Source: Mobula hypostoma
Taxonomy: Eukaryota
DNA: 64,000 nt
Reading direction: 5' to 3'
NCBI RefSeq assembly: GCF_963921235.1
Contig: NC_086129.1
Location: forward strand, 31,868,001 to 31,932,000
The notes beneath the pieces are model-generated. The model saw only the letters and a list, made by a program, of their open reading frames with translations. It was not told the origin of the DNA and did not search any database. Positions 40,746 to 54,400 of this stretch are shown in pieces. Both the position numbers and the translations under genes were made by a program. Position 1 is the stretch's first letter. Every line of letters begins with the position of its first letter.

Positions 40746-41099
40746 AGCTTATGAATATGTAAACAGTATTGTTTATGCAGCTAATTCATAAATTTTATTC
40801 ATAAGGACCACAGAAAGGTTAAGTAAGGTTAAAAAAACACTATTTACACTGATTTTGCTAGTGGAATTGCAGGAAATGAGAGGTAAATTTTGTGAGAGAT
40901 TTTCAAAGGTGAATAAAAACAATTTGATGCAAAACAATAATCCATCGGAACTGACAATAAAGGTCATTGAAATGATACTGACGGAGCAGAAGTTACCTTA
41001 GATGTTGTGACTGGATTCGGTTCCATTTTCCCACACTTCATTTACGTAGCATCTCACTGTTGATTGAACTAAGCAGAACATTTAAGAGGGGGGGGGGGA

Positions 41100-41301
41100 G
41101 AGCGAAAAGCTTCACCTCGAACGTAACTTCCTCCGTTCAGCACATTCTCTGGCATTTCTCAGTCTCTGCTGATCTCCGCCTGGAACATATAAATTACTTA
41201 CGGGCAAAACATCCACATCCTTTACTGCAGCCCGAACACTTCGAGCTGGTTAAGGGGGCCGAGAGTTTAAACTGTATAGGGACCGCTGGAATCAGAGAAA
41301 G
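41100..41301 (+). promoter_or_regulatory. Putative promoter / 5' region of the IgSF gene
   Basis: Unique, locally CpG-containing DNA with an ETS-like ACTTCCT (41126..41132) and TATAAA (41188..41193) about 110 bp upstream of the ATG. Function is inferred only. Confidence 0.4.
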
Positions 41302-41350
41302 ATGCAATTATTCCTGAAACTTCTTTTCCTCTTACAGGCACTAGTCCGAG
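41302..41350 (+). CDS. IgSF receptor exon 1: signal peptide MQLFLKLLFLLQALVR(G)
   Basis: ATG at 41302, a hydrophobic leader and a consensus donor CGAG|GTAAGT. Phase 1 joins in frame to exon 2. Confidence 0.85.
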
Positions 41351-41788
41351 GTAAGTTACTTTGAGCTGACGATGTATGCACTAACAAAAACCTGTGATGA
41401 GGATCATAATTTTACCCATTTCTGCATTTAAATGTCATTACGGAACGAGTCTATTATTGAGATAGCTAATCGATTAAAATTTCTACTCAGAGGTCTAGAA
41501 CACCTTCATAAGGTTTCGCCTCAATTAAATCTATATTTATTTGGGTTGAAATATGTTTTGCGTATTCGTTGAATGCGAATCCAGACGCTGATTCGATAAT
41601 TTAAAATTGTATTTGAGGTAACATTTGGTTAGTATAGCACCATCATTGAACTTGAATCAAAGTTAATCGTGGCTACACCGCTCTGCAACCGCTCAGTGCA
41701 TTTAAACCAAGCTCAGGCAGAATGTTGGATCCCAAATTAACATATAATTTAGGACCAAATCTGACAAGCTTTATTTCTTTCCCATCAG

Positions 41789-42136
41789 GGGTTCCAGTGG
41801 TCTTGGAGGTGAACCAGCCGCGTCTCGTCAGTGTCTGGAGAGGGGAGTCAGTCACGTTAAACTGCAGCTTTACTCATAATGCAACTGAGGATGGCTGGGT
41901 CATCATTTCCTGGCACAGGACATCACCAAGGGCTGGAGATGTTCCTTACAAAGTGAATAATCTGCATTGTGTCCCTGACGCCTGTCTGCATGGATTGAAA
42001 CGCTGTAATGCATCACTGAGGGTTGAACATGTCTCCTTTGATCACTCTGGTAATCGCTACACCTGTATCCTGAGGATACCCAGTGTCTACCCACCATTAG
42101 AGGCAAGAGGCCAAGGAACACTGCTGCAGGTTTATG
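41789..42136 (+). CDS. IgSF receptor exon 2: V-set (VJ-type) Ig domain
   Basis: Acceptor tttctttcccatcag and donor G|gtaaac. Motifs GESVTLNC, ISW, SLRV, RYTC and J-like ARGQGTLLQV. Confidence 0.92.
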
Positions 42137-42634
42137 GTAAACTTTTTTTTGTCATTCTACAAGTATAGTTTCTGCAATGTGTATCAGTATCAGAATCAGG
42201 TTTATTATCACTGACATGTGTAGTGAAATTTGTTGTGCTGTGGCAGCAGCCATTATTCATAACAGGCCAAGAAACACTGCTGTAGGTTTATGATTAAACA
42301 TTTGTATCATTCTGCAAATATGCAATTTTTGCACTGAACATTTATTTGATACAATAATGTTAAAACATGGTGACATTTGTACCAAGCCATATACTGAAAC
42401 ATTAATATACATGACAACAAGCACAACCAACGAGAAAGCTTAAGAAATGGGCATTAGGTTTCAACCACAGCAAATAGGGGTAAATCGGTGCTGGTGTTTT
42501 GAGTGAATTTTGCCAGATCTGATAGGTTATATGTGGTTTCATTTTAATAGAGGATCATAAATCAGTTATGAAGATCATATCTGAAATTGATATTGTATTT
42601 CTTCTTTTGCTATCTACAATAAATATAGGTAGCT

Positions 42635-44570
42635 TGGAGTAAATGAGGTGCTCGAGGAATATAAAGATTGTGAAAAGAATCTTAAGAAAGAAATTAGAAA
42701 AGCTAAAAGAAGATATGAGGTTACTTTGGCAAGTAAGGTGAAAATAAATCCAAAGGGTTTCTACAGTTATATTAATAGCAAAAGGATAGTGAGGGATAAA
42801 ATTGGTCCCTTAGAGAATCAGAGTGGACGGCTATGTGTGGAGCCAAAAGAGATGGCGGAGATTTTGAACAATTTCTTTTCTTCAGTATTCACTAAGGAGA
42901 AGGATATTGAATTGTGTAAGGTAAGGGAAACAAGTAGGGTAGTTATGGAAACTATGATGATTAAAGAACCATGGCACTTTTAAGGAATATAGAAGTGGAT
43001 AAGTCTCCGGGTCCTGACAGGATATTCCCTAGGACCTTGAGGGAAGTTAGTGTGGAAATAGCAGGGGCTCTGACAGAAATATTTCAAATGTCATTAGAAA
43101 CATGGATGGTGCTGGAGGATTGGCGTATTGCTCATGTTGCTCCATTGTTTAAAAAGGGTTCTAAGAGTAAACCTAGCAATTATCGGCCTGTGAGTGGTTG
43201 GTACATTGATGGAAAGTACTCTTAGAGATGGTATATATAATTATTTGGATAGACAGGGTCTGGTTAGGAACAGTCAACGTGGATTTGTGTGTGGAAGGTC
43301 ATGTTTGACAAAACTTATTGAATTTTTTGAAGAGGTTACTAGGAAAGTAGATGAGGGTAAAGCAGTAGATGTTGTCTATATGGACTTCAGTAAGGCCTTT
43401 GACAAGGTTCCATATGGAAGGTTAGTTAGGAAGGTTCAATCTTTAGGTCTTAATATTGAAGTAGTAAAATGGATTCAGCAGTGGCTGGATGGGAGACGCC
43501 AGAGAGTAGTGGTGGATAACTGTTTGTCAGGTTGGAGGCCGGTGCCTAGTGGTGTGTCCCAAGGATCTGTACTGGGTCTAATGTTGTTTGTCATATATAT
43601 TAAAGATCTGGATAATGGGGTGGTAAATTGGATTAGTAAGTATGCAGATGATACTAAGGTGGGTGGAGTTGTGGATAATGAAGTAGGTTTTCAAAGCTTG
43701 CAGAGAGATTTAGGCCAGTTAGAAGAGTGGGCTGAAAGAAGGCAGATGGAGTTTAATGCTGATAAATGTGAGGTGCTACATTTTGGTAGGACTAATCAAA
43801 ATAGGACATACATGGTAAATGGTAGGGCATTGAAGAATGCAGTGGAACAGAGGGATCTAGGAATAATGGTGCATAGTTCCCTGAAGGTGGAGTCTCATGT
43901 GGATAGGGTGGTGAAGAAAGCTTTTGGTATGCTGGCCTTTATAAATCAGAGCATTGAGTATAGGAGTTGGGATGTAATGTTGAAATTGTACAAGGCATTG
44001 GTAAGGCCAAATTTGGAGTATTGTGTACAGTTCTGGTCACCTAATTATAGGACAGATGTCAACAAAATTGAGAGAGTATAGAGAAGATTTACTAGAATGT
44101 TACCTGGGTTTCATGTCCTAAGTTAAAGAGAAAGGTTGAACAAGTTGGGTCTTTATTCTTTGGAGCATAGAAGGTTGAGGGGGGACTTGATAGAGGCATT
44201 TAAAATTATGAGGGGGATAGATAGAGTTGACGTGGATAGGCTTTTTTTCCATTGAGAGTGGGGGAGATTCAAACAAGAGGACATGAGTTGAGAGTTAAAG
44301 GGCAAAAGTTTAGGGGTAACATGAGGGGGAACTTCTTTACTCAGAGAGTGGTAGCTGTGTGGAACGAGCTTCCAGCAGAAGTGGTTGAGGCAGGTTCAAT
44401 GTTGTCATTTAAAGTAAAATTGGATAGCTATATGGCCAGGAAAGGAATGGAGGGTTAAGGGCTGAGTGCAGGTCGGTGGGACTAGGTGAGAGTAAGAGTT
44501 CGGCACGGACTAGAAGCGCTGAGATAGCTTGTTTCCGTGCTGTAATTGTTAAATATAATATGGTTATATA
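42635..44570 (+). mobile_element. CR1 LINE 3' half in intron 2 (young; 295-aa RT ORF at 43194..44081)
   Basis: YMDFSKAFDKVP, SGVSQGSVLG, KYADDTK and LYKALVRPNLEYCVQFWSP, plus a CR1 3' UTR. Confidence 0.92.
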
Positions 44571-45329
44571 ATTGTTCATGTGACTTTTACATTCATTTAC
44601 CTTTTTAAGAATAATTAAAAAGTGCCAATGCCAATCACTCTATTTAATATTCCAAATAGCCAACAGTTGTTTCATTTCCAATATATTAACAATCCAATGA
44701 AATAAAAATAATTATTATAAATAGACACCAGGCAATGGTAAAGAAATATCTATTGTACACAGTTTGGAGCTTAATGGGGATGTAGTATAAAGAGTATAAA
44801 CTTATGAGTTTCTGCAACAAGGAAAACAGCAAGGATCTAGTTATCCCAGCAGAAATGTAAGTAACTTGGGAGCCAAAAAGAATTAAGTAAGTGTTGATAA
44901 AAGATGACTATGTGGCAGAGTCTGGAGCTCACCAGCTGAATGGGTGATCAGAGGTGAAATTCTCAACATGTTTCATAAGTACCTGTAGGGCTTTGAACCT
45001 GGGAAATTAGATTAAAATCTATTTTGGCTCCTATGTACGGCAGCGGTCTCCATCCATGCCATGATTTTTTGATTGCATTAACACTTACAGCTAGAATAAT
45101 TCAGAAGCCCACCAATTTCCCACTGAATTGACTTACTGTGCATTAAGATTATCTTGTAATTAATACAGACCGTGGGGCTGCTGCATGTGAGTTTGATCCA
45201 ACAATTGCTCTTGCGATATTTTATTATATAATCCAATTTAAGCATAAACATGGAGTAATATTATACTTCTCCAACATATGTTTGTTCCTTGATGCTTCTC
45301 ACCTAAAGAATAGGCTGTTTTACTTGAAG

Positions 45330-45805
45330 ATTTACTAGAATGTTACCTGGGTTTCATCACCTAAGATACAGAGAAAGGTTGAACAAGTTGGGTCTTTATT
45401 CTTTGGAACGTAGAAGGCTGAGGGGGGACTTGATTGAGGTGTTTAAAATTATGAGGGGGATAGACAGAGTTGATGTGGATAGGCTTTTTCCATTGAGAGT
45501 GGGGGAGATTCAAACAAGAGGACATGAGTTGTGAGTTAAAGGGCAAAAGTTTAGGGGTAACATGAGGGGGAACTTCTTTACTCAGAGAGTGGTAGCTGTG
45601 TGGAACGAGCTTCCAGCAGAAGCGGCTGAGGCAGGTTCGATGTTGTCGTTTAAAGTTAAATTGGACAGCTATATGGACAGGAAAGGAATGGAGGGTTATG
45701 GGCTGTGCAGGTCGGTGGGACTAGGTGAGAGTAAGAGTTCAGCACGGACTAGAAGGGCCGAGATGGCCTGTTTCCGTGCTGTAATTGTTATATGGTTATA
45801 TGGTA
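45330..45805 (+). mobile_element. CR1 3' end in intron 2 (same subfamily as 44080..44570)
   Basis: Near-identical to 44082..44560 by eye. Confidence 0.9.
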
Positions 45806-45973
45806 ATCATTTGATATAACTCTTTTAAATTAATATATTCTGTATCAAGCTAAAGCAAATTTACTCTGTGAGTAAGCTTCACTAACATAAAAATACATTA
45901 GTGAAGTTTGTTGACAGAGTAAGATACAGTCAATATAGTTTAATACAGTATATTGTGCTTTGTTCTCTTTTAG

Positions 45974-46276
45974 AACCTCCTGAAATTTCTGTTCTGGATG
46001 GTCCTTTGGTTGCTGATAATGAATCCGTCCTCAACTGCTCAGGCAACGGGTTGTTAGCTGAGGATATCTCCTTTACATGGGCATGCTCAGGAACAAACAA
46101 TTTTACGGAAGTTGCTGGACCAACTCTGTGGAAGAATAATAATGGCACTTCTGTTGTCACCAGCCAGCTTAAGCTTGTCCCAAGAGTGGAAGACCATGGG
46201 TCTGTTTGCAGCTGTCAGATTGATCATGCCACCTTCAGACAACCAATTAAAATCCATATCAAGCTAAATGTTATGT
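45974..46276 (+). CDS. IgSF receptor exon 3: C1/C2-like (nectin/CD80-type) Ig domain
   Basis: Acceptor ttctcttttag and donor T|gtaagt, phase 1-1. PPEISV..LNC.G...DISFTW...GTSVVTSQLKLVP..EDHG..C.CQIDH.TF. Confidence 0.92.
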
Positions 46277-47972
46277 GTAAGTATAATCTTCATTGTGTAT
46301 GCTAATCTTCAAACTTTTATTATATCGACATTATTCCCTGTTATAACTGAGATGTATATTGCTGTCTGTGATAGTGCAACTGAATTCCCTACGTGTGCTT
46401 TTGATGCTTGTGGACCCAATTCCACTACTTTGATCACTCATCCACTTTTCACAACACTTTTTCCTTTTGCACCTTTCCTTGTTGTATACTTCAGAGCTCT
46501 CCATTAAATTTCCCAATCTCTAGGACACAAAGTTGATCCTTTCTGTGACTCTTGACCCACTCATTACTACCTCTTTTATGAAGGGTCAATTCCAACATTG
46601 CAATACATTCTAGTGAGTGTGGCTGTCTCTACATGGTTCCACTTTGATCCATTAAGTTTTAACCACAGATCAACTTACTCCACCCCCACCCCCCACACCG
46701 TCATGTATCATTACATGACCCCTTCCTGTTTTTCACCTAACCTCCCCTATTGCTTACATTATCCAAAAAATATAAAGCTTCAGACGTGGGTACTTACTTC
46801 ACCACCACCTTGTACAATTTCTCCATTACGTCTTTGCTCAGAGACTGCCTGTCCGAGATTCAACCCTGGAAGATTTGCAATAGTTAAACCTTGGGAAAAC
46901 GTTGTCTTTGACTGCTGCTAAAGTTCAGTGCCCTTCATCTTATCCTAGTGACAAAGAGTCATTGAATCCATACAGCACAGAAAAGGCCATTTGGCCAATC
47001 TGGTCCATGTTTCCCATCTAAGCTTGCCCCATACTCCCATGTTTCCCCTACATCCCTTCAAGTCTTTCTTATCCATGTACCTGCCCAAGTACTTTTATAA
47101 TATTATTAATGTACACTGCCTCACGCAGCTAATTCAATGTACTGACCAGTCTTTTGACTCTTCGATGTAATTTCAATCACATCATCACAGAGACTCCCTA
47201 TATCCACTCTTTATTTCCTCTCTCCACCTTTACTTTGACTCAACTGCTAATCTATCATCCAGTCTTTTATTGCATGCAGACTTGATTTTCTGCCAACTGT
47301 TCTGGCTAGCTTGTATTAGATTAAAGAAAGATTCTCACATGTACTTTAAAATATACAGTGAAATGGATCATTTGCGGTCGACATGAAAACGTACAAACTC
47401 CTTACAAACAGTGGTGGGAATTGAACCCCAATCAGTAATCACCGGCATTGTAAAGTGATTGCATTAACTTTTATGCTACTGTAAATAAAGGAATATCCAA
47501 ATCTCTTTCATTATGTAATGACACAACAGATTTCACTCTTACACTTCTTCTGTAATTAAAACTTTTATTGTTTCCAAATCAACGATTTATTACTTTTGAA
47601 CTATTAACTTCTGGGCAGATTCCTCCATGACCTACCCTCATGGTAAACCCCTCACAGCCTATAACCCCCCCAAGAACTCTACATTTTTCCAGCTGTAACC
47701 TTGCGGAATCTCAACTTCTTTCATGTGATTAGTGTGCTAAGCTCCTGAATTCACTCACCGTCCATCTGTACATCCATAGGCAAGAAAATTATCTTTGTCT
47801 AAACCTTAGTTACAAAACTTTGTTTTGGTAGTAGTTTGATCTTCAACACATAGATCCCTTGGAACTGCTGACCTTTCAGAAGTGCTCAGTCTGCTTTTAT
47901 TGTCTACTCATGCATCAATTGTATCTATATTGCTGCGGTCTACAATAACGTATGTATTGCTTTTATTGTTAG

Positions 47973-48302
47973 ATGGACCACATGATTCAATAATAACATA
48001 CAAGTTGAATACCATGGGTAATTATCTTCCTATCAACCATAGTGAAATCATTGCTGTTGTCGGTTCATCCTTGGCACTGAATTGCTGTATGACGAGTAAC
48101 CCCGCTTCCACTGTGATGTGGACAAAGGTCAGGGAGAGTCCAAATGGAACATTACAAACTAATATTGGATTAAACTGCACAGAAGTACAGATACATGTTC
48201 AATCTGAAGATGAGGGAATCTATTGGTGCATGGCATACAACGACTACGGCAGCAGAAACACAAGCATTTGGATTAAAGCAAATCATGAAACCAATTATAA
48301 CT
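47973..48302 (+). CDS. IgSF receptor exon 4: C2/I-set Ig domain
   Basis: Acceptor cttttattgttag and donor T|gtaagt. The junction creates the typical V(M)YGP motif. GSSLALNC..SNP..VMWTK...EDEGIYWCMAYNDYG. Confidence 0.92.
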
Positions 48303-48709
48303 GTAAGTATGCATGCATGTGTGTACATTACAGTACTTATTGAGTTTGACTCAATCTCAGGAAATGAAAGCTCAGAATAATTAATTCTGTATCTTCTTTC
48401 TTGGTCTTAGTAGTTGATGATTGTTATATTTGTTTGCATTTTAAAATACACATTCAGTGCTATAAGCATCAAGTGCTTACAATGCTTTTACACTGTAGGG
48501 CAAATAACTTCTAAAAATTAAAATGCTGCAATTTTGTTTATTAATGAATGTGTACATCCTCTAGAACTGTTGGAAATATTTAACCTGCTTTCAAATTGAA
48601 TAAAGCAACTGCATTTGTATTATTTTATTTTTATGTCTCCAAACATTTTATTTTGTGAAAATGTTGACATCTTGAATTTTTATTCTGTTATTTATTATAT
48701 TTTTCACAG

Positions 48710-48799
48710 ATTATCAACTTTATGCTGTGCTCCCCATAACTACAGTCATCATTATGACAATAATGTTTTCTTGGCTGATCTGCAAGAGGCAACGGAAAG
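48710..48799 (+). CDS. IgSF receptor exon 5: transmembrane segment plus basic stop-transfer
   Basis: Acceptor tatttttcacag and donor G|gtaaat, phase 1-1. YYQLYAVLPITTVIIMTIMFSWLIC-KRQRK. Confidence 0.85.
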
Positions 48800-49234
48800 G
48801 TAAATCTTAAAATAAATCATTGGTTGTAGGTGTTAACCTTACTATTGACATCAATAGTGAGCTGAAAACGATGTGGTTTTCAACAGACTGCATGATTATA
48901 CATTGCTTTTCAATTTTGTGTGTTCAATTTTTGGGTTATTTGCATGACCTAACCTCCCTCTGTTAAATAAGCAAATCATTTGAAGTTAGAGGATTGTGGA
49001 AGAGCTTGTTCAATGTTTGAAATTTTATTACTTGTACTCTTGATGTCATCGTAAAATTTATGCTAAAATGAGTAACATTTTCCTTGATAAAGATAAAAAC
49101 TGTTATTTTAGACTTCACAGAAATTATGCTCTCATTTTCTGTTAGATACTAAATGTTTAAAAGTCCTAATTGGATTAAGTTGAAGGAAGTGAATGAAAGG
49201 TGATATAAATTTTGATTTCTGTAATATTGTTCAG

Positions 49235-49251
49235 CATTTGACTGGAAATGA
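49235..49251 (+). CDS. Candidate terminal coding exon (AFDWK*)
   Basis: Acceptor tttctgtaatattgttcag, phase 1. Nearby alternative acceptors (~49110, ~49145) would give other short tails, so the true last exon is uncertain. Confidence 0.4.
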
Positions 49252-49691
49252 TACTGAAGAGCTGATTCAGCAAGTCAGAGGGAAATGAAGGTTTATAAAT
49301 GATAAAACAGGCTGTGACCATTATTTTCCAGAAGTCTTTGGTAAAGAAACATGCTAGATGATGAAATTTGCAAAACTGATTTTCTGCAAAAAAGAAGATA
49401 AACTAGATTTCAATTTAATTTGGTTCTGATGTTAGCATAAAATTTGGAATGAAATTACCAACAGGAATTAGTAAGATTTACTATTTTCAAAGGCAAGTTG
49501 AGCAGGTTACAGTATTTTTTTACACCAGAGAGAAGCTGCAGTGATTGTAAGTTTAAATATGTTTTTGGGAAAAGATTTTTAAGTTGGAGCTTTATGGTAA
49601 ACAGATAGCACACGTCTTTGGCAACAGAGCATAAATAAGGTATAATATTAAAATGTAATTTCTTCAGAGTGAAATGGCTCAGTGACTAATG

Positions 49692-50510
49692 TGAACATAA
49701 GAAATAGGAGCAGGAGATGGTTATCTGGCCCATTGAGCCTGCTCCGCCATTCAATCAGATCATAACTGCTCTGGCCATAAACTCATCTCTACCTACCCGC
49801 CTTTTCTGCATACCCCTTAATTCCCCTACTATGCAAAAATCTATCCAACCTTGTCTTAAATATATTTACTGCGTTAGCCTCTACTACATCATTGGGCAGA
49901 GAATTCCACAGATTCACCATGTTTTGGGAAAAGCAGTTCCTCCTCATCTCCGTCCTAAATTTAGTCCCCCGAATCTTGAGGCTATGTTCCCTAGCTCTAG
50001 TTTCACCTACCAGTAGAAACAACTTTCCTGCCTCTAACTTATCTATCCCTTTCATAATTTCATACATTTCTATAAGATCTCCTCTCATTCTTCTGAATTC
50101 CAGCGAGTACCATACCAGGCAACTCAATCTCTGCTCATAGTCTAACGCCTTCATCTCCGGAATCAACCCGGTAAACCTCCTCTGCACCGCCTCCAAAGCC
50201 AGTGTATCCTTCCTCAAGTAAGGAAACCAGAACTGCACACAGTACTCCAGGTGCGGCCTCACCAGTACCCTGTATAGTTGCAGCATAACCTCCCTGCCCT
50301 TAAATTCAATCCTCTAGCAATGAAAACCAACTTTCCATTTGCCTTCTTGATAGCCTGCTGCACCTGTAAACCAACCCTCTGCGATTCATGCACAGGCACT
50401 CCCAAGTCCCTCTGCACAGCAGCATGTTGCAATCTTTTATTTAAATAATAATCTGATCTTCCATTTTGACTTCTAAAGTGGATGACTTCTCATTTACCAA
50501 TATTGTACTA
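49692..50510 (-). mobile_element. CR1 3' region
   Basis: MLQLYRVLVRPHLEYCVQFW...RRMRGDLIEMY (ORF 49789..50286). Confidence 0.9.
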
Positions 50511-51439
50511 ATACAATGCTCCTATTTGTATTGGGTAATTTTATTTACTCTTTATTGATAAATAGTAAGATTGGAATGCTACCATCTACTGGTTCATCTC
50601 CAAGTCACACACCATCCTGGAAGTATATAGTCAGACCTTTATTATCACTACATCTAACTAGTGGAACTCGCTAGCTAACAACACTGTGTGAATACCCTCT
50701 AAGAAGAACTGCTGTGGCTCATCACCTTCTCCAGGACAGCTTGGAAAGGGCAATAAATGCAGACTTAAATAAAGCATTTGGCAATTCATGAAATAATATA
50801 AAAATGGCTAACCATATGGAATTGGAAGATTTGCAAAATTGGAATCAGGATCTACATTATGAGGGCATAAGAAATAATATGACTAGCAACGTGGAAAATT
50901 CTAAGAAATTTTTCAAACTTTGGAAAATAAAAGGAAGACATTTTATGGGAAATGTTTAGATTGGGTGGCTTTAATCTGTAGTTTAATCCATGAGTAAATT
51001 AGGCCAAAGGATGGAACTCTTCAGTATTGCCTGTGGAGACATAAATGTTTTTCATTAATTCACATGATGTAGGAGCCCCTGACACTTGTTGACCTTTGTA
51101 AAAGAAAAGGGAATGATTTTGAACTTATTTTACTTGCTGAAGTTAGAGCATTATATGCAGAGGAAATTCAGTAATGGAAAATTGCAACATGGATTCTCCA
51201 GAAGGCTATCAGGATGTGGAGTTACTCATTAAGAGGATTAAAAGAAAATGGGTTTTATTTAGTTCTGCTGCAGAGGTCAAAAGTTGTCTAACAGGATTTA
51301 TGGGCAATATGACTAATGAGAAATTACTACAATCTCTCACGAAGTTTTTGAAATGAAAATAATTTGAAGCAAACTTCGGAAAAAAACTATGATTCTCAGG
51401 TTGATGTTAGAATAGTTTATGTTATCTTTGAGAAATAAT

Positions 51440-54400
51440 TAGCTGTTTGAAGAAGTGAAGCCTTAAAATACAGGTCGGCTGGTGAGAACAGTGGGAAGAG
51501 TTTTAAAGCGGGCAGAGTTGAAAAGGTGACGGTTATTTCTTCAGCAGTTTGAAGGGGCACGACTGCGCAAGTGCACGGAGGTCAGCCAGTGAGAACAGAG
51601 GGAAGAGTTTGAATAGAAGACAGCTTTACAGAGCGGCTGATAGAGTAGAGGGAGACAGAGAAGGAAGGCTATGGCTCCATGGGGCTTCAGCGATAAAGGG
51701 TCGAGGCGAGGTGGGTTATCTGATTAGAATACAGACAGAAAGAATGTGTGTGAGGCCAGTTTTCTGTGCTCGGTGTCAGTTGTGGGAGGTCCTGAAGACT
51801 CCCAGCCTCCCGGACGGCCACATCTGCAGCAGGTGCGTCGAGCTGCAGCTCTTTAGGGACTGCCTCAGGGAACTGGAGATGCAGCTTGATGACCTTCGTC
51901 TGGTCAGGGAGAGTGAGGAAGTGATAGAGAGGAGCTATAGGCTGGTAGTCACTTCGGGAACTGGGGAGACAGATAAGTAGATAACAGTCAGGAGAGGGAA
52001 GGACAAGAAGCAGGTGCTAGAGAGTACCCCTGTGGCTGTTCCCCTTAACAATAAGTACTCCTGCTTGAGTACTGTTAGGGGAGACGGCCTACCTGGGGGA
52101 AGCAACAGTGGTCGTGCCTCTGGCACAGAGTCGGGCCCTGTGGCTCAGAAGGTTAGGAAAAGGAAGAGGATAGCAGCAGTGATAGGGGACTCTATAGTTA
52201 AGGAGTCAGAGATGCGATTCTGTGGGCGCAGGAAAGAAACGTGGATGGTAGTTTGCCTCCCAGGTGCCAGGGTCCAGGATGTTTCTAATCGCGTCCACGA
52301 TATTTTGAAGTGGGAAGGAGAACAGCCAGAGGTTGTGGAACATATTGGTACCAACGATATAGGTAGGAAAAGGGAGGAAAACAAAGCACAGGGAGTTAGG
52401 AAGGAAGATGAGAAGCAGGACCTTACAGGTAGTAATCTTGGGATTACTGCTTGTGCCACAGGACAGTGAGTATAGGAATAGAATGAGGTGGAGGATGAAT
52501 GCGTGGCTGAGGGATTGGAGCACAGGGCAGGGATTCAGATTTCTGGATCATTGAGAACTCTTTTGGGGCAGGAATTGTCTTTACTCGATCGGACCCGATG
52601 CAATAACAATTGTACAACAAATACACTGACATACGTAATTTTTTTCAAACCTTTATTCTCTACTCATAGCATGCTATGGGGGAAGTTACAGACTGATCTC
52701 CCAAAGGAGCCAGTCCGGAGACTGCCCCCGAATTACACGGTTCTCCACAATTTATAACATTGATCATGTAGCAGGAAATCTTACGATTACAAGTTTAGAT
52801 AATGTTAGAATCATTTCAGTCACATGCTAAGATACAATTAGATGTAAAATAGTCATTGGTCAGTTAGTTATAATTATTTTAAGCCAAAGCTATCCCATCA
52901 GTTCCTCATTCGGACCCTTCCCCTTTTCTCCAGAACATTCTAGCCCCTACACTATACTCCCCATATTTAGCTATATCTTGAGCTGCTTCTGCAAGATCAG
53001 ATAGTTCCTTATTTGAGTCTTTGCCTGTCTTTAGAGAACAATGACTAGTATGTCACCGGTTGCAGAGTGAAACTTCTTTTTGACTGTCCAAACTTGTCCA
53101 AAGCGGTAAGCTAAGGTGCTTGCAATGTGATTGATTATAAGTTAATCATTGTCCACTGTTTTTCCCCCTATTTACCTATCCCTTCATTCCATCAGAATGA
53201 CCTGTAGAAAAAGGACTTGAATCCCAGGGGGACCAATATCCTGGCGGGGATGTTTGCTCAGGCTATTGGGGAGAGTTTAAACTGGAATTGCTGGGGGGCG
53301 GGAACAAAACTGAAGTGACAGAGGAAAAGGGAGGTTGGCTCACAAATAGAGAAAGCTTGGAGACAGGGCGAAAGGGAGCATAGGCAGGTGATAGAGAAGG
53401 GAGGCGCTCAGACCGATGGTTTGAGATGTGTCTATTTTAATGCAAGGAGTATTATGAACAAAGTGGACGAGCATAGAGTGTGGATCAGCACTTGGAGCTA
53501 TAATGTTGTGGCCATTACAGAGAATTGGATGGTGCAGGGGCAGGAATGGCTACTTCAAGTGCCTGGCTTTAGGTGTTTCAGAACGGGCAGGGAAGGAGGG
53601 AAGAGGTGGGGGCATGGCACTGTTGCTCAGGGATAGTGTCACAGCTGCAGAAAAGGAGGAGGTCATGGAGGGGTTGTCTACTGAGTCTCTGTGGGTGGAA
53701 GTTAGGAACAGGAAGGGGTCAATAACTCTACTGGATGTTTTTTATAGAACACCCAATAGTAACAGGGACATCGAAGAGCAGATAGGGAGGCAGATTCTGG
53801 AAAGGAGTAATAATAACAGGGTTGTTGTGGTGGGAGATTTTAATTTCCCAAATATTGATTGGCATCTCCATAGAGTGAGGGGTTTAGATGGAGTGGAGTT
53901 TGTTAGGTGTGTTCAGGAAGGTTTCTTGACACAATATGTAGATAAGCCTACAAGAGGAAAGGCTCTACTTGATCTGCTACTGGGAAATGAACCTGGTCAG
54001 GGTCAGGTCTCTCAGTGGGAGAGCATTTTGGAGATAATGATCACAATTCTATCTCCTTTACCATAGCATTGGAGAGGGATAGCAAAAGACAAGTTTGGGA
54101 AACGCTTAATTGGAGTAAGGGGAAATATGAAGCCATCAGGCAGGAACTTGGAAGCATAAATTGGAAACAGATGTTCTCAGGGAAACGTACGGAAGAAATG
54201 CGGCAAATGTTCAGGAGATATTTGCGTGGGGTTCTGCGTAGGTATGTTCCAATGAGACAGGGAAAGGATGGTAGGGTACAGGAATCGTGGTGTACAAAGG
54301 CTGTTGTAAATCTAGTCAAGAAGAAAAGAAGAGCTTACGAAAGGTTCAAAAAACTAGGTAATGATAGAGATCTAGAAGACTATAAGGCTAGCAGGAAGGA

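Follow-up and report, generated by a model that had tools for sequence, protein, structure and literature searches.

Results

An immunoglobulin-type receptor gene in the window

The stretch of DNA studied here (the window) comprises 64,000 nucleotides of the lesser devil ray Mobula hypostoma (contig NC_086129.1, positions 31,868,001 to 31,932,000 of the forward strand) and contains the first five exons of a gene for a membrane receptor with three immunoglobulin (Ig) domains. A preliminary description, made from the DNA letters alone, had presented this gene as intact and unassigned, with five GT-AG exons, all in phase 1, and a further candidate piece as its last exon. Re-splicing of the window reproduced the five exons with AG/GT borders throughout, every one in phase 1, as a single open frame, and the 11 N-glycosylation sequons reported earlier were recovered as 11 N-x-S/T sites in the spliced product. 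The features of the gene are as follows:

41096..41301, forward strand: putative promoter and 5′ untranslated region (UTR), conserved with the skate; about 109 nt of 5′ UTR according to an RNA contig of run X2
41302..41350, forward strand: exon 1 (49 nt), ATG at 41302, donor GT at 41351; leader peptide, phase 1 end
41789..42136, forward strand: exon 2 (348 nt), V domain on a single exon, Pfam V-set
45974..46276, forward strand: exon 3, C1-set domain (Pfam C1-set 7e-7, C2-set_2 6e-6)
47973..48302, forward strand: exon 4, I-set/C2-type domain (Pfam Ig_3 2e-8, I-set 6e-8)
48710..48799, forward strand: exon 5, end of the stalk, uncharged transmembrane helix and KRQRK stop-transfer sequence; phase 1 end
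49235..49251, forward strand: candidate last exon of the preliminary description, unsupported

The V domain of exon 2 has the canonical cysteines of the B and F strands, extra cysteines and the sequence YPP in the FG loop. It closes with GQGTLLQV, which places the V domain and a J-like GxGTxLxV strand on one exon and bears out the J-like GxGT end proposed earlier. In order, the encoded parts are a V domain with a J-like end, then C1-set and I-set domains, and last a transmembrane segment; Pfam domain calls thus agree with the proposed layout of V, C1-like, C2/I-set and transmembrane parts, and the VxYxP-type junction is present between domains 2 and 3 as LNVMYGP. In alignments of the window with skate DNA, the block 41096-41645 was conserved with both skate copies of the gene, and the donor of exon 5 is kept in five elasmobranchs. 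The promoter scan used bacterial consensus patterns and is uninformative for this gene.

Public annotation and the 3′ end of the gene

The product of the spliced exons 1 to 5 is identical, over 373 of 373 residues, to residues 1-373 of XP_062894477.1, a 495-aa Mobula hypostoma protein named "sialic acid-binding Ig-like lectin 14" in RefSeq. The gene was therefore already predicted in public annotation, it is no discovery in itself, and the label "unassigned" does not hold, though the assigned name is doubtful. After KRQRK, XP_062894477.1 continues with DPVNVS and carries a 122-aa tail with one motif of the immunoreceptor tyrosine-based switch type (ITSM; TVYAVV) and two of the immunoreceptor tyrosine-based inhibitory type (ITIM; VSYADI and SEYSAV). 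This tail ends in QDLITA, that of other members in QDLRTV/A. The gene is accordingly not intact in the window, which holds exons 1-5 only, and its real end is the ITSM/ITIM tail, not the AFDWK end given in the preliminary description. The earlier length of 1137 nt or 378 aa is arithmetically right when the sixth piece is counted, but the product is not, since the piece at 49235-49251 is unsupported: it occurs in neither XP_062894477.1 nor any orthologue, and no 48799>49235 joint is among the RNA joints listed.

No tail exon was detected in the window by tblastn at very loose settings with the tails of three orthologues and the DPVNVS micro-exon as queries, which returned noise only. In related species the tail is encoded by about five small exons far downstream of the transmembrane exon, the first of them 31 kb away in the whale shark and 9 kb away in the skate. 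The annotated Mobula hypostoma gene spans 51.3 kb and orthologous genes span 41-68 kb. Colinearity of the window with copy 2 of the skate gene extends to 62298 and does not reach the first skate tail exon. From the distant tail exons of the relatives and this colinearity we infer that the tail exons of the Mobula hypostoma gene lie downstream of the window. A resemblance between intron 5 and the DPVNVS exon was considered and rejected as chance, because in a DNA alignment the same intron sequence equally continues past the donor in whale shark and skate, which makes the likeness at the protein level accidental.

Transcription, splicing and a possible tail-less product

Exonic words of the locus were found in four RNA runs, three of them from organism A and one, X2, from a related species, and the RNA contigs were placed on 45800-51799 for the detection of joints. 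The GT..AG joint 46276>47973 was present in contigs of all four runs and was free of mismatches in the three organism-A runs. The joint 48295/48302>48710 was found in one X2 contig of 1359 nt that spans exons 3, 4 and 5 and lacks 3 nt from the end of exon 4. A spliced transcript thus exists, with the joints of exons 3 to 4 and 4 to 5 present in RNA contigs. The same X2 contig has a further 506 nt ahead of exon 3, the sum of exon 2 (348 nt), exon 1 (49 nt) and about 109 nt of 5′ UTR, and at its other end it leaves the window at 48799 and continues for 132 nt that are unmatched there. The organism-A runs contained a share of 0.36-0.41 of the sampled words of 41250-42200, which is the expectation if transcription in this part is limited to exons 1 and 2 and the 5′ UTR.

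Directly behind the donor of exon 5 we found a further feature:

48800..48882, forward strand: conserved non-coding element in the first part of intron 5, with an in-frame stop at 48808-48810 and AATAAA at 48811-48816

Its identity is 81-85% to whale shark, Heptranchias and Narcine and 79% to copy 2 of the skate. The insertions and deletions are not multiples of three, conservation is above that of the coding exons, and GT-rich runs follow. The AATAAA is present in four of five species and is lacking in the whale shark. A conserved RNA structure found no covariation support in 48800-48882 (covariation term positive; one compensatory pair in 38). Judged by its sequence and position, the element may be a site of intronic polyadenylation or of splicing control before a very long intron. 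Copy 1 of the gene in the skate Leucoraja erinacea does not have this element after its transmembrane exon. Further downstream, the X2 run had a mean word depth of 5.7 in 49200-49399, which overlaps 49235-49251 and is explained by no listed piece or joint.

These features bear on whether the main product could be tail-less, ending either in the sixth exon (AFDWK) or by read-through of the donor (GKS, then stop) with polyadenylation in intron 5. Such a product is suggested by the stop and the AATAAA within an 83-nt element that is conserved in five elasmobranchs, by a skate relative (P0001) that is annotated with a short tail, and by the slight unexplained RNA coverage of 49200-49399 in one run. 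Against it, 48800-48999 was without RNA contigs in all four runs, the X2 contig departs from the window at 48799 and continues beyond it, the RefSeq models of both Mobula species connect exon 5 with the long tail, and one of the five elasmobranchs, the whale shark, does without the AATAAA. We consider a tail-less main product unlikely.

Distribution and evolution of the gene family

A search with the V exon against 1.84 billion representatives returned only six close clusters, at 44-51% identity, after which there was a drop of sixteen orders of magnitude in E-value. Word-index searches found the family in skates, rays and sharks, where its members are automatically named Siglec-8, -12, -13 or -14, MAG-like or sialoadhesin-like. 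Public annotation as a whole offers five mutually conflicting names for the family (Siglec-8/12/13/14, MAG-like, sialoadhesin-like, SIRP-alpha-like and HMCN2); SIRP-alpha-like is what RefSeq calls the relatives in paddlefish and sturgeon. A mammalian orthologue was absent from the results of every search run, in line with the earlier statement that no recognised mammalian gene matches. The suggested confinement to cartilaginous fish has to be given up, since relatives are also present in paddlefish, sturgeon, bowfin and gar. The alignment with the paddlefish protein covered the entire ectodomain (29% identity over 313 aa, E 1e-43); like this protein, the gar and sturgeon relatives have the three ectodomain Ig domains and the extra V-domain cysteines. 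A search started from the paddlefish protein brought up the bowfin and gar relatives, the bowfin entry being a fragment from the end of the V domain onward. Outside the fishes, the closest matches to the V domain included turtle proteins of the layout V-C1-transmembrane (P0018, P0025 and P0047), automatically named "tapasin-related protein-like", as well as proteins of gecko, caecilian and hamster (31% identity, J-like GNGTQLRV). The turtle proteins may be the PRARP genes mentioned in PMC10751288. In the literature on shark and fish Ig receptors we found no published description of the family.

In a maximum likelihood tree of 18 members, the branching tracked the species tree, with batoids, lamniforms, catsharks and carpet sharks as groups. 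The sequences were cut to the ectodomain and P0035, P0044, P0054 and P0056 were excluded as partial or duplicated. The window protein was the sister of that of Mobula birostris at 93% identity, an older paralogue occurred in Pristiophorus, and paddlefish, sturgeon and gar formed the sister clade. The counterpart of the gene in sharks, skates and rays is a single 1:1 orthologue in each species. Compared with P0036 from Mobula birostris, the V domain of the window is 86%, the C1 domain 99% and the third domain 94.5% identical. The two species differ at 16 of 116 residues in the V domain and at 1 of 101 in the C1 domain, and four of the five nucleotide differences in exon 3 are silent. This pattern of substitutions suggests that the V domain may be under diversifying selection.

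In an alignment of 14 members, four cysteines of the V domain were invariant and the YPP of the FG loop was nearly so. The J-like GxGTxLxV motif was found in 19 of 20 members. The three tyrosine motifs of the tail are kept in nearly all long-tailed orthologues. Short-tailed members (P0043, P0044, P0006, P0046, P0055, P0056 and P0058), which are found in some sharks and in ray-finned fishes other than teleosts, have an arginine at or in the membrane helix, whereas the helix of ITIM-bearing members is uncharged. This pairing of a short tail and membrane arginine on one side with an ITIM tail and uncharged helix on the other suggests activating and inhibitory forms, and thus what may be a family of paired receptors.

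Several irregular gene copies were observed alongside. In the skate Leucoraja erinacea, the exons for V, C1, the third domain and the transmembrane segment are present twice in tandem (L002, 9802-16498 and 29296-36664). The RefSeq protein P0034 of this skate takes its Ig exons from copy 1 and its transmembrane segment and tail from copy 2 and may be chimeric. In Hemiscyllium ocellatum, P0035 is annotated with two near-identical V domains in tandem, a duplication of the V exon within the family.

The gar and sturgeon copies of the family gene are followed on the same strand, at a distance of 2.7-3.8 kb, by a gene with RIIa and IQ domains (gar L001, 16305-23615; sturgeon L003, 16666-17152). The exons of this neighbour read like SPA17, and we take it to be an SPA17-like gene. 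Human SPA17 is located at 11q24, near NECTIN1, CADM1 and CRTAM. SPA17-like exons were found neither in the window nor in the skate or whale-shark locus. No gene adjoining the family gene lies within the window. The sturgeon locus holds two more Ig-domain genes upstream of the family gene (L003, 1-7519), one of them with a weak V-set_CD47 Pfam match.

Domain types and comparison with named families

C1-set domains have been defined by a spacing of 13 residues between cysteine and tryptophan, by xVxH and by (F/Y)(F/Y/H)P (Hatherley et al., PMC2785349). In domain 2 of the family, exactly 13 residues separate the B-strand cysteine from the C-strand tryptophan in all 20 of 20 members, and the F strand, which reads CQIDH in the window, is of the CxVxH type in 19 of 20. 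At the start of the BC loop the window has LLA and most elasmobranch orthologues have LYS, LYD or WYS in place of (F/Y)(F/Y/H)P; FYP or FFP is restricted to P0006, paddlefish, sturgeon and bowfin. Pfam C1-set was matched in 14 of 14 members.

Among solved structures, the best match of exon 3 was the constant domain of B7-H6 (1.8e-7), followed by IgE, IgA and SIRP-alpha, and exon 4 matched contactins, DCC, MAG and CADM4. The likeness to B7-H6 (NCR3LG1), although this is the best solved match of exon 3 when searched as a single sequence, is confined to the constant domain: the V domain and the remainder are unmatched, and B7-H6 has two Ig domains. A profile search with the V-C1 part had Ig heavy and light chains, UrIg2 (E 1e-30) and SIRP-alpha and -gamma among its best matches. 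UrIg2 and UrIg resemble the devil-ray gene in a single-exon VJ followed by C1. They are non-rearranging, antigen-receptor-like shark genes with many C1 domains and antibody-like dimers (PMC12227049). Identity with them was rejected on account of these many C1 domains, as the devil-ray gene has one C1 domain, one I-set domain and an inhibitory tail.

The colinearity of the V-C1 part with domains 1 and 2 of SIRP-alpha (E 5e-23 and 8.5e-25) raises the possibility that the gene is the cartilaginous-fish orthologue of SIRP-alpha. Both combine a non-rearranging J-like V domain and a C1-set domain with an inhibitory tail of tyrosine motifs, here with YADI and EYSxV and thus with the tyrosines of a SIRP-type ITIM tail (TVYAVV, VSYADI and SEYSAV in XP_062894477.1, outside the window), and both have short-tailed forms. 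SIRP-alpha and -beta were also among the top V-C1 fold matches, with the highest identities (20-23%), and RefSeq applies the SIRP-alpha name to the paddlefish and sturgeon relatives. The SIRP ectodomain is V-C1-C1, however, and although domains 1 and 2 of the devil-ray protein fit, its third domain is not C1 but Ig_3/I-set with matches of the contactin and DCC type. Pairwise similarity to hamster SIRP is limited to the V domain at 27%, V identity to the family lies at about 20-27% overall, and the SPA17-like neighbour in gar and sturgeon is not that of a SIRP-type neighbourhood as known from the human map. Orthology with SIRP-alpha is therefore the kind of reading we hold to be highly improbable.

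The preliminary description had placed the layout with the nectin, CADM and CD155 molecules. The layout, the junction and the fold matches agree with this, but the V-C1 sequence appears closer to Ig chains, UrIg2 and SIRP-alpha. Membership among the nectin, Necl (CADM) and PVR proteins would make the gene mainly an adhesion molecule or a PVR-like ligand-receptor molecule. The devil-ray ectodomain of V, C1-like and C2/I-set domains is the same as theirs, including the LxVxYxP junction between domains 2 and 3. The V-C1 model (predicted local distance difference test score, pLDDT, of 85) matched the folds of lambda chains, SIRP-alpha and domains 1-2 of nectin-3 and -4, and against Swiss-Prot models it matched tapasin, SIRP-alpha and -beta, nectins and CADMs. 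Nectin-1, -3 and -4, CADM1-4 and CD155 ranked near the top of the fold searches and had the highest TM-scores (0.57-0.63). A nectin-2 cluster was among the atlas features; atlas feature searches gave Ig clusters without discriminating power. The position of the gar and sturgeon copies beside the SPA17-like gene, with the human map around SPA17, fits here as well. In sequence, no nectin, CADM or PVR chain appeared among the best 60 matches in five sequence or profile searches (with V, C1, V-C1 and the whole protein or ectodomain), CADM4 surfacing for domain 3 only. Further points of difference are the J-like end of the V domain, present in nearly all members, the FYP/FFP motifs of C1 in basal members, and an ITSM/ITIM tail ending in LITA or LRTV in place of the afadin-binding or 4.1/PDZ-binding ends of these adhesion proteins. 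We regard membership in this group as improbable.

The RefSeq name implies a true Siglec, that is, a sialic-acid-binding lectin of the CD33/MAG type with an inhibitory tail. The best fold matches of the three-domain model of the window ectodomain (pLDDT 83) were indeed Ig domains 1-3 of MAG (E 6.5e-18), together with domains 1-3 of CD22 and Siglec-13, -8, -6, -14 and -12; nectin-1 and -3, Necl-4 and the CD33-type Siglecs in general were matched as well, and SIRP ranked lower. In a profile alignment, domains 2-3 matched those of MAG with 52.7 bits, LxVxYxP junction included, and the tail, with an ITIM and a membrane-distal SEYSxV, is built as in CD33-type Siglecs. The binding domain differs. 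The V domain of Siglecs lacks the F-strand cysteine, has a B-E disulfide and carries an extra cysteine bonded to domain 2. By contrast, the V domain of the family keeps the canonical YxC cysteine of the F strand and the C-strand tryptophan, both missing in Siglecs, and these residues and the B-strand cysteine are invariant in the 14-17 members aligned. By reading of the motif, the residue after the F-strand cysteine is I, E, V or A and not the arginine of the Siglec YFFR motif. A lysine or arginine three residues past this cysteine is not conserved (asparagine in Heterodontus), and HMMER could not align the region to MAG. Pfam Ig_CD22 (PF24518), which the atlas lists for the CD22-like and CD33-like V clusters, gave no match to the V exon of the window at E <= 1 and none in the 14 members at E <= 0.01. 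MAG domain 1 aligned over just 41 residues with 12 bits, domain 2 is of the C1 set in every member searched, and no Siglec was among the best 30-60 matches of the V-C1 part. A true Siglec is thus very unlikely; as far as the sequence goes, the name appears unsupported by the V domain and the public label doubtful.

The protein is a mosaic of a V-C1 part of the antigen-receptor and SIRP type, a third domain and overall shape like those of nectins and Siglecs, and an ITSM/ITIM tail. Given this mosaic similarity and the absence of the Siglec V hallmarks, we did not file the gene under Siglec, SIRP or nectin.

Repeats in and around the gene

Two features in the introns and further repeats around the gene contradict the earlier notion that it lies in a region devoid of transposable elements:

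42648..44554, forward strand: fragment of a long interspersed nuclear element (LINE) in intron 2, 1.9 kb, truncated at the 5′ end and decayed, with broken open reading frames; RVT_1 at 43194-44078 (E 4e-21)
45326..45793, forward strand: second copy of the 3′ end of that LINE in intron 2, about 470 nt; direct repeats D1-D3, 93-96% identical to 44083-44554

In each of the four runs, RNA contigs with 5-10% mismatch reached depths between hundreds and thousands at about 47200-47600 and 49600-50600, which marks both stretches as interspersed repeats of high copy number with transcription from somewhere in the genome. The flanks carry LINE, RNase H and integrase fragments.

Discussion

The gene in the window is, with good probability, a type I membrane receptor of the inhibitory kind that recruits SHP phosphatases, with an ectodomain of J-like V, C1 and I-set domains and an ITSM/ITIM tail, and a 1:1 orthologue of a gene found throughout the elasmobranchs. 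An SHP-recruiting inhibitory receptor is what the predicted tail motifs most likely indicate. Binding of a putative ligand by the fast-evolving V domain would lead to phosphorylation of the tyrosines in the ITSM and the ITIMs, and the phosphorylated tail would recruit phosphatases of the SHP-1/SHP-2 type, by which the receptor-bearing cell would be damped. Four points weigh against this. The stop and the AATAAA just past the exon 5 donor could give rise to a tail-less isoform; the tail exons were not seen in the window; the splicing of exon 5 to the tail is indirectly documented, by the 132-nt overhang of the X2 contig, as contigs of the species itself are too short to show it; and signalling through SHP phosphatases is deduced from motifs alone.

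To our knowledge, few non-rearranging genes combine a J-like V domain with a true C1 domain, namely SIRP, tapasin, PVR-type, UrIg and PRARP genes. A bolder reading takes the devil-ray gene for an independent surviving lineage of non-rearranging VJ-C1 genes, separate from SIRP, UrIg, NKp30 and PRARP, which combines a V-C1 core of the antigen-receptor type with a third domain of the nectin and Siglec type and an inhibitory tail, and which in ray-finned fishes stands beside an SPA17-like gene in a region matching human 11q24. This we consider doubtful. If it were true, the gene would be a living intermediate between adhesion-type receptors with three Ig domains and the V-C1 unit of antigen receptors that was lost in teleosts and tetrapods. 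Any link to the origin of antigen receptors is speculation.

The preferred reading, an orthologous inhibitory receptor of elasmobranchs, describes an apparently undescribed family of VJ-C1 inhibitory receptors. Correction of the public label matters for counts of Siglecs or SIRPs in fishes. Non-rearranging genes with a J-like V and a C1 domain are the main material for arguments about the origin of antibodies and T-cell receptors, and the present family would add to them a further one that is one-to-one in elasmobranchs, extends to basal ray-finned fishes, has a V domain that evolves much faster than its C1 domain and bears signs of paired forms. For comparative immunology its interest is moderate.

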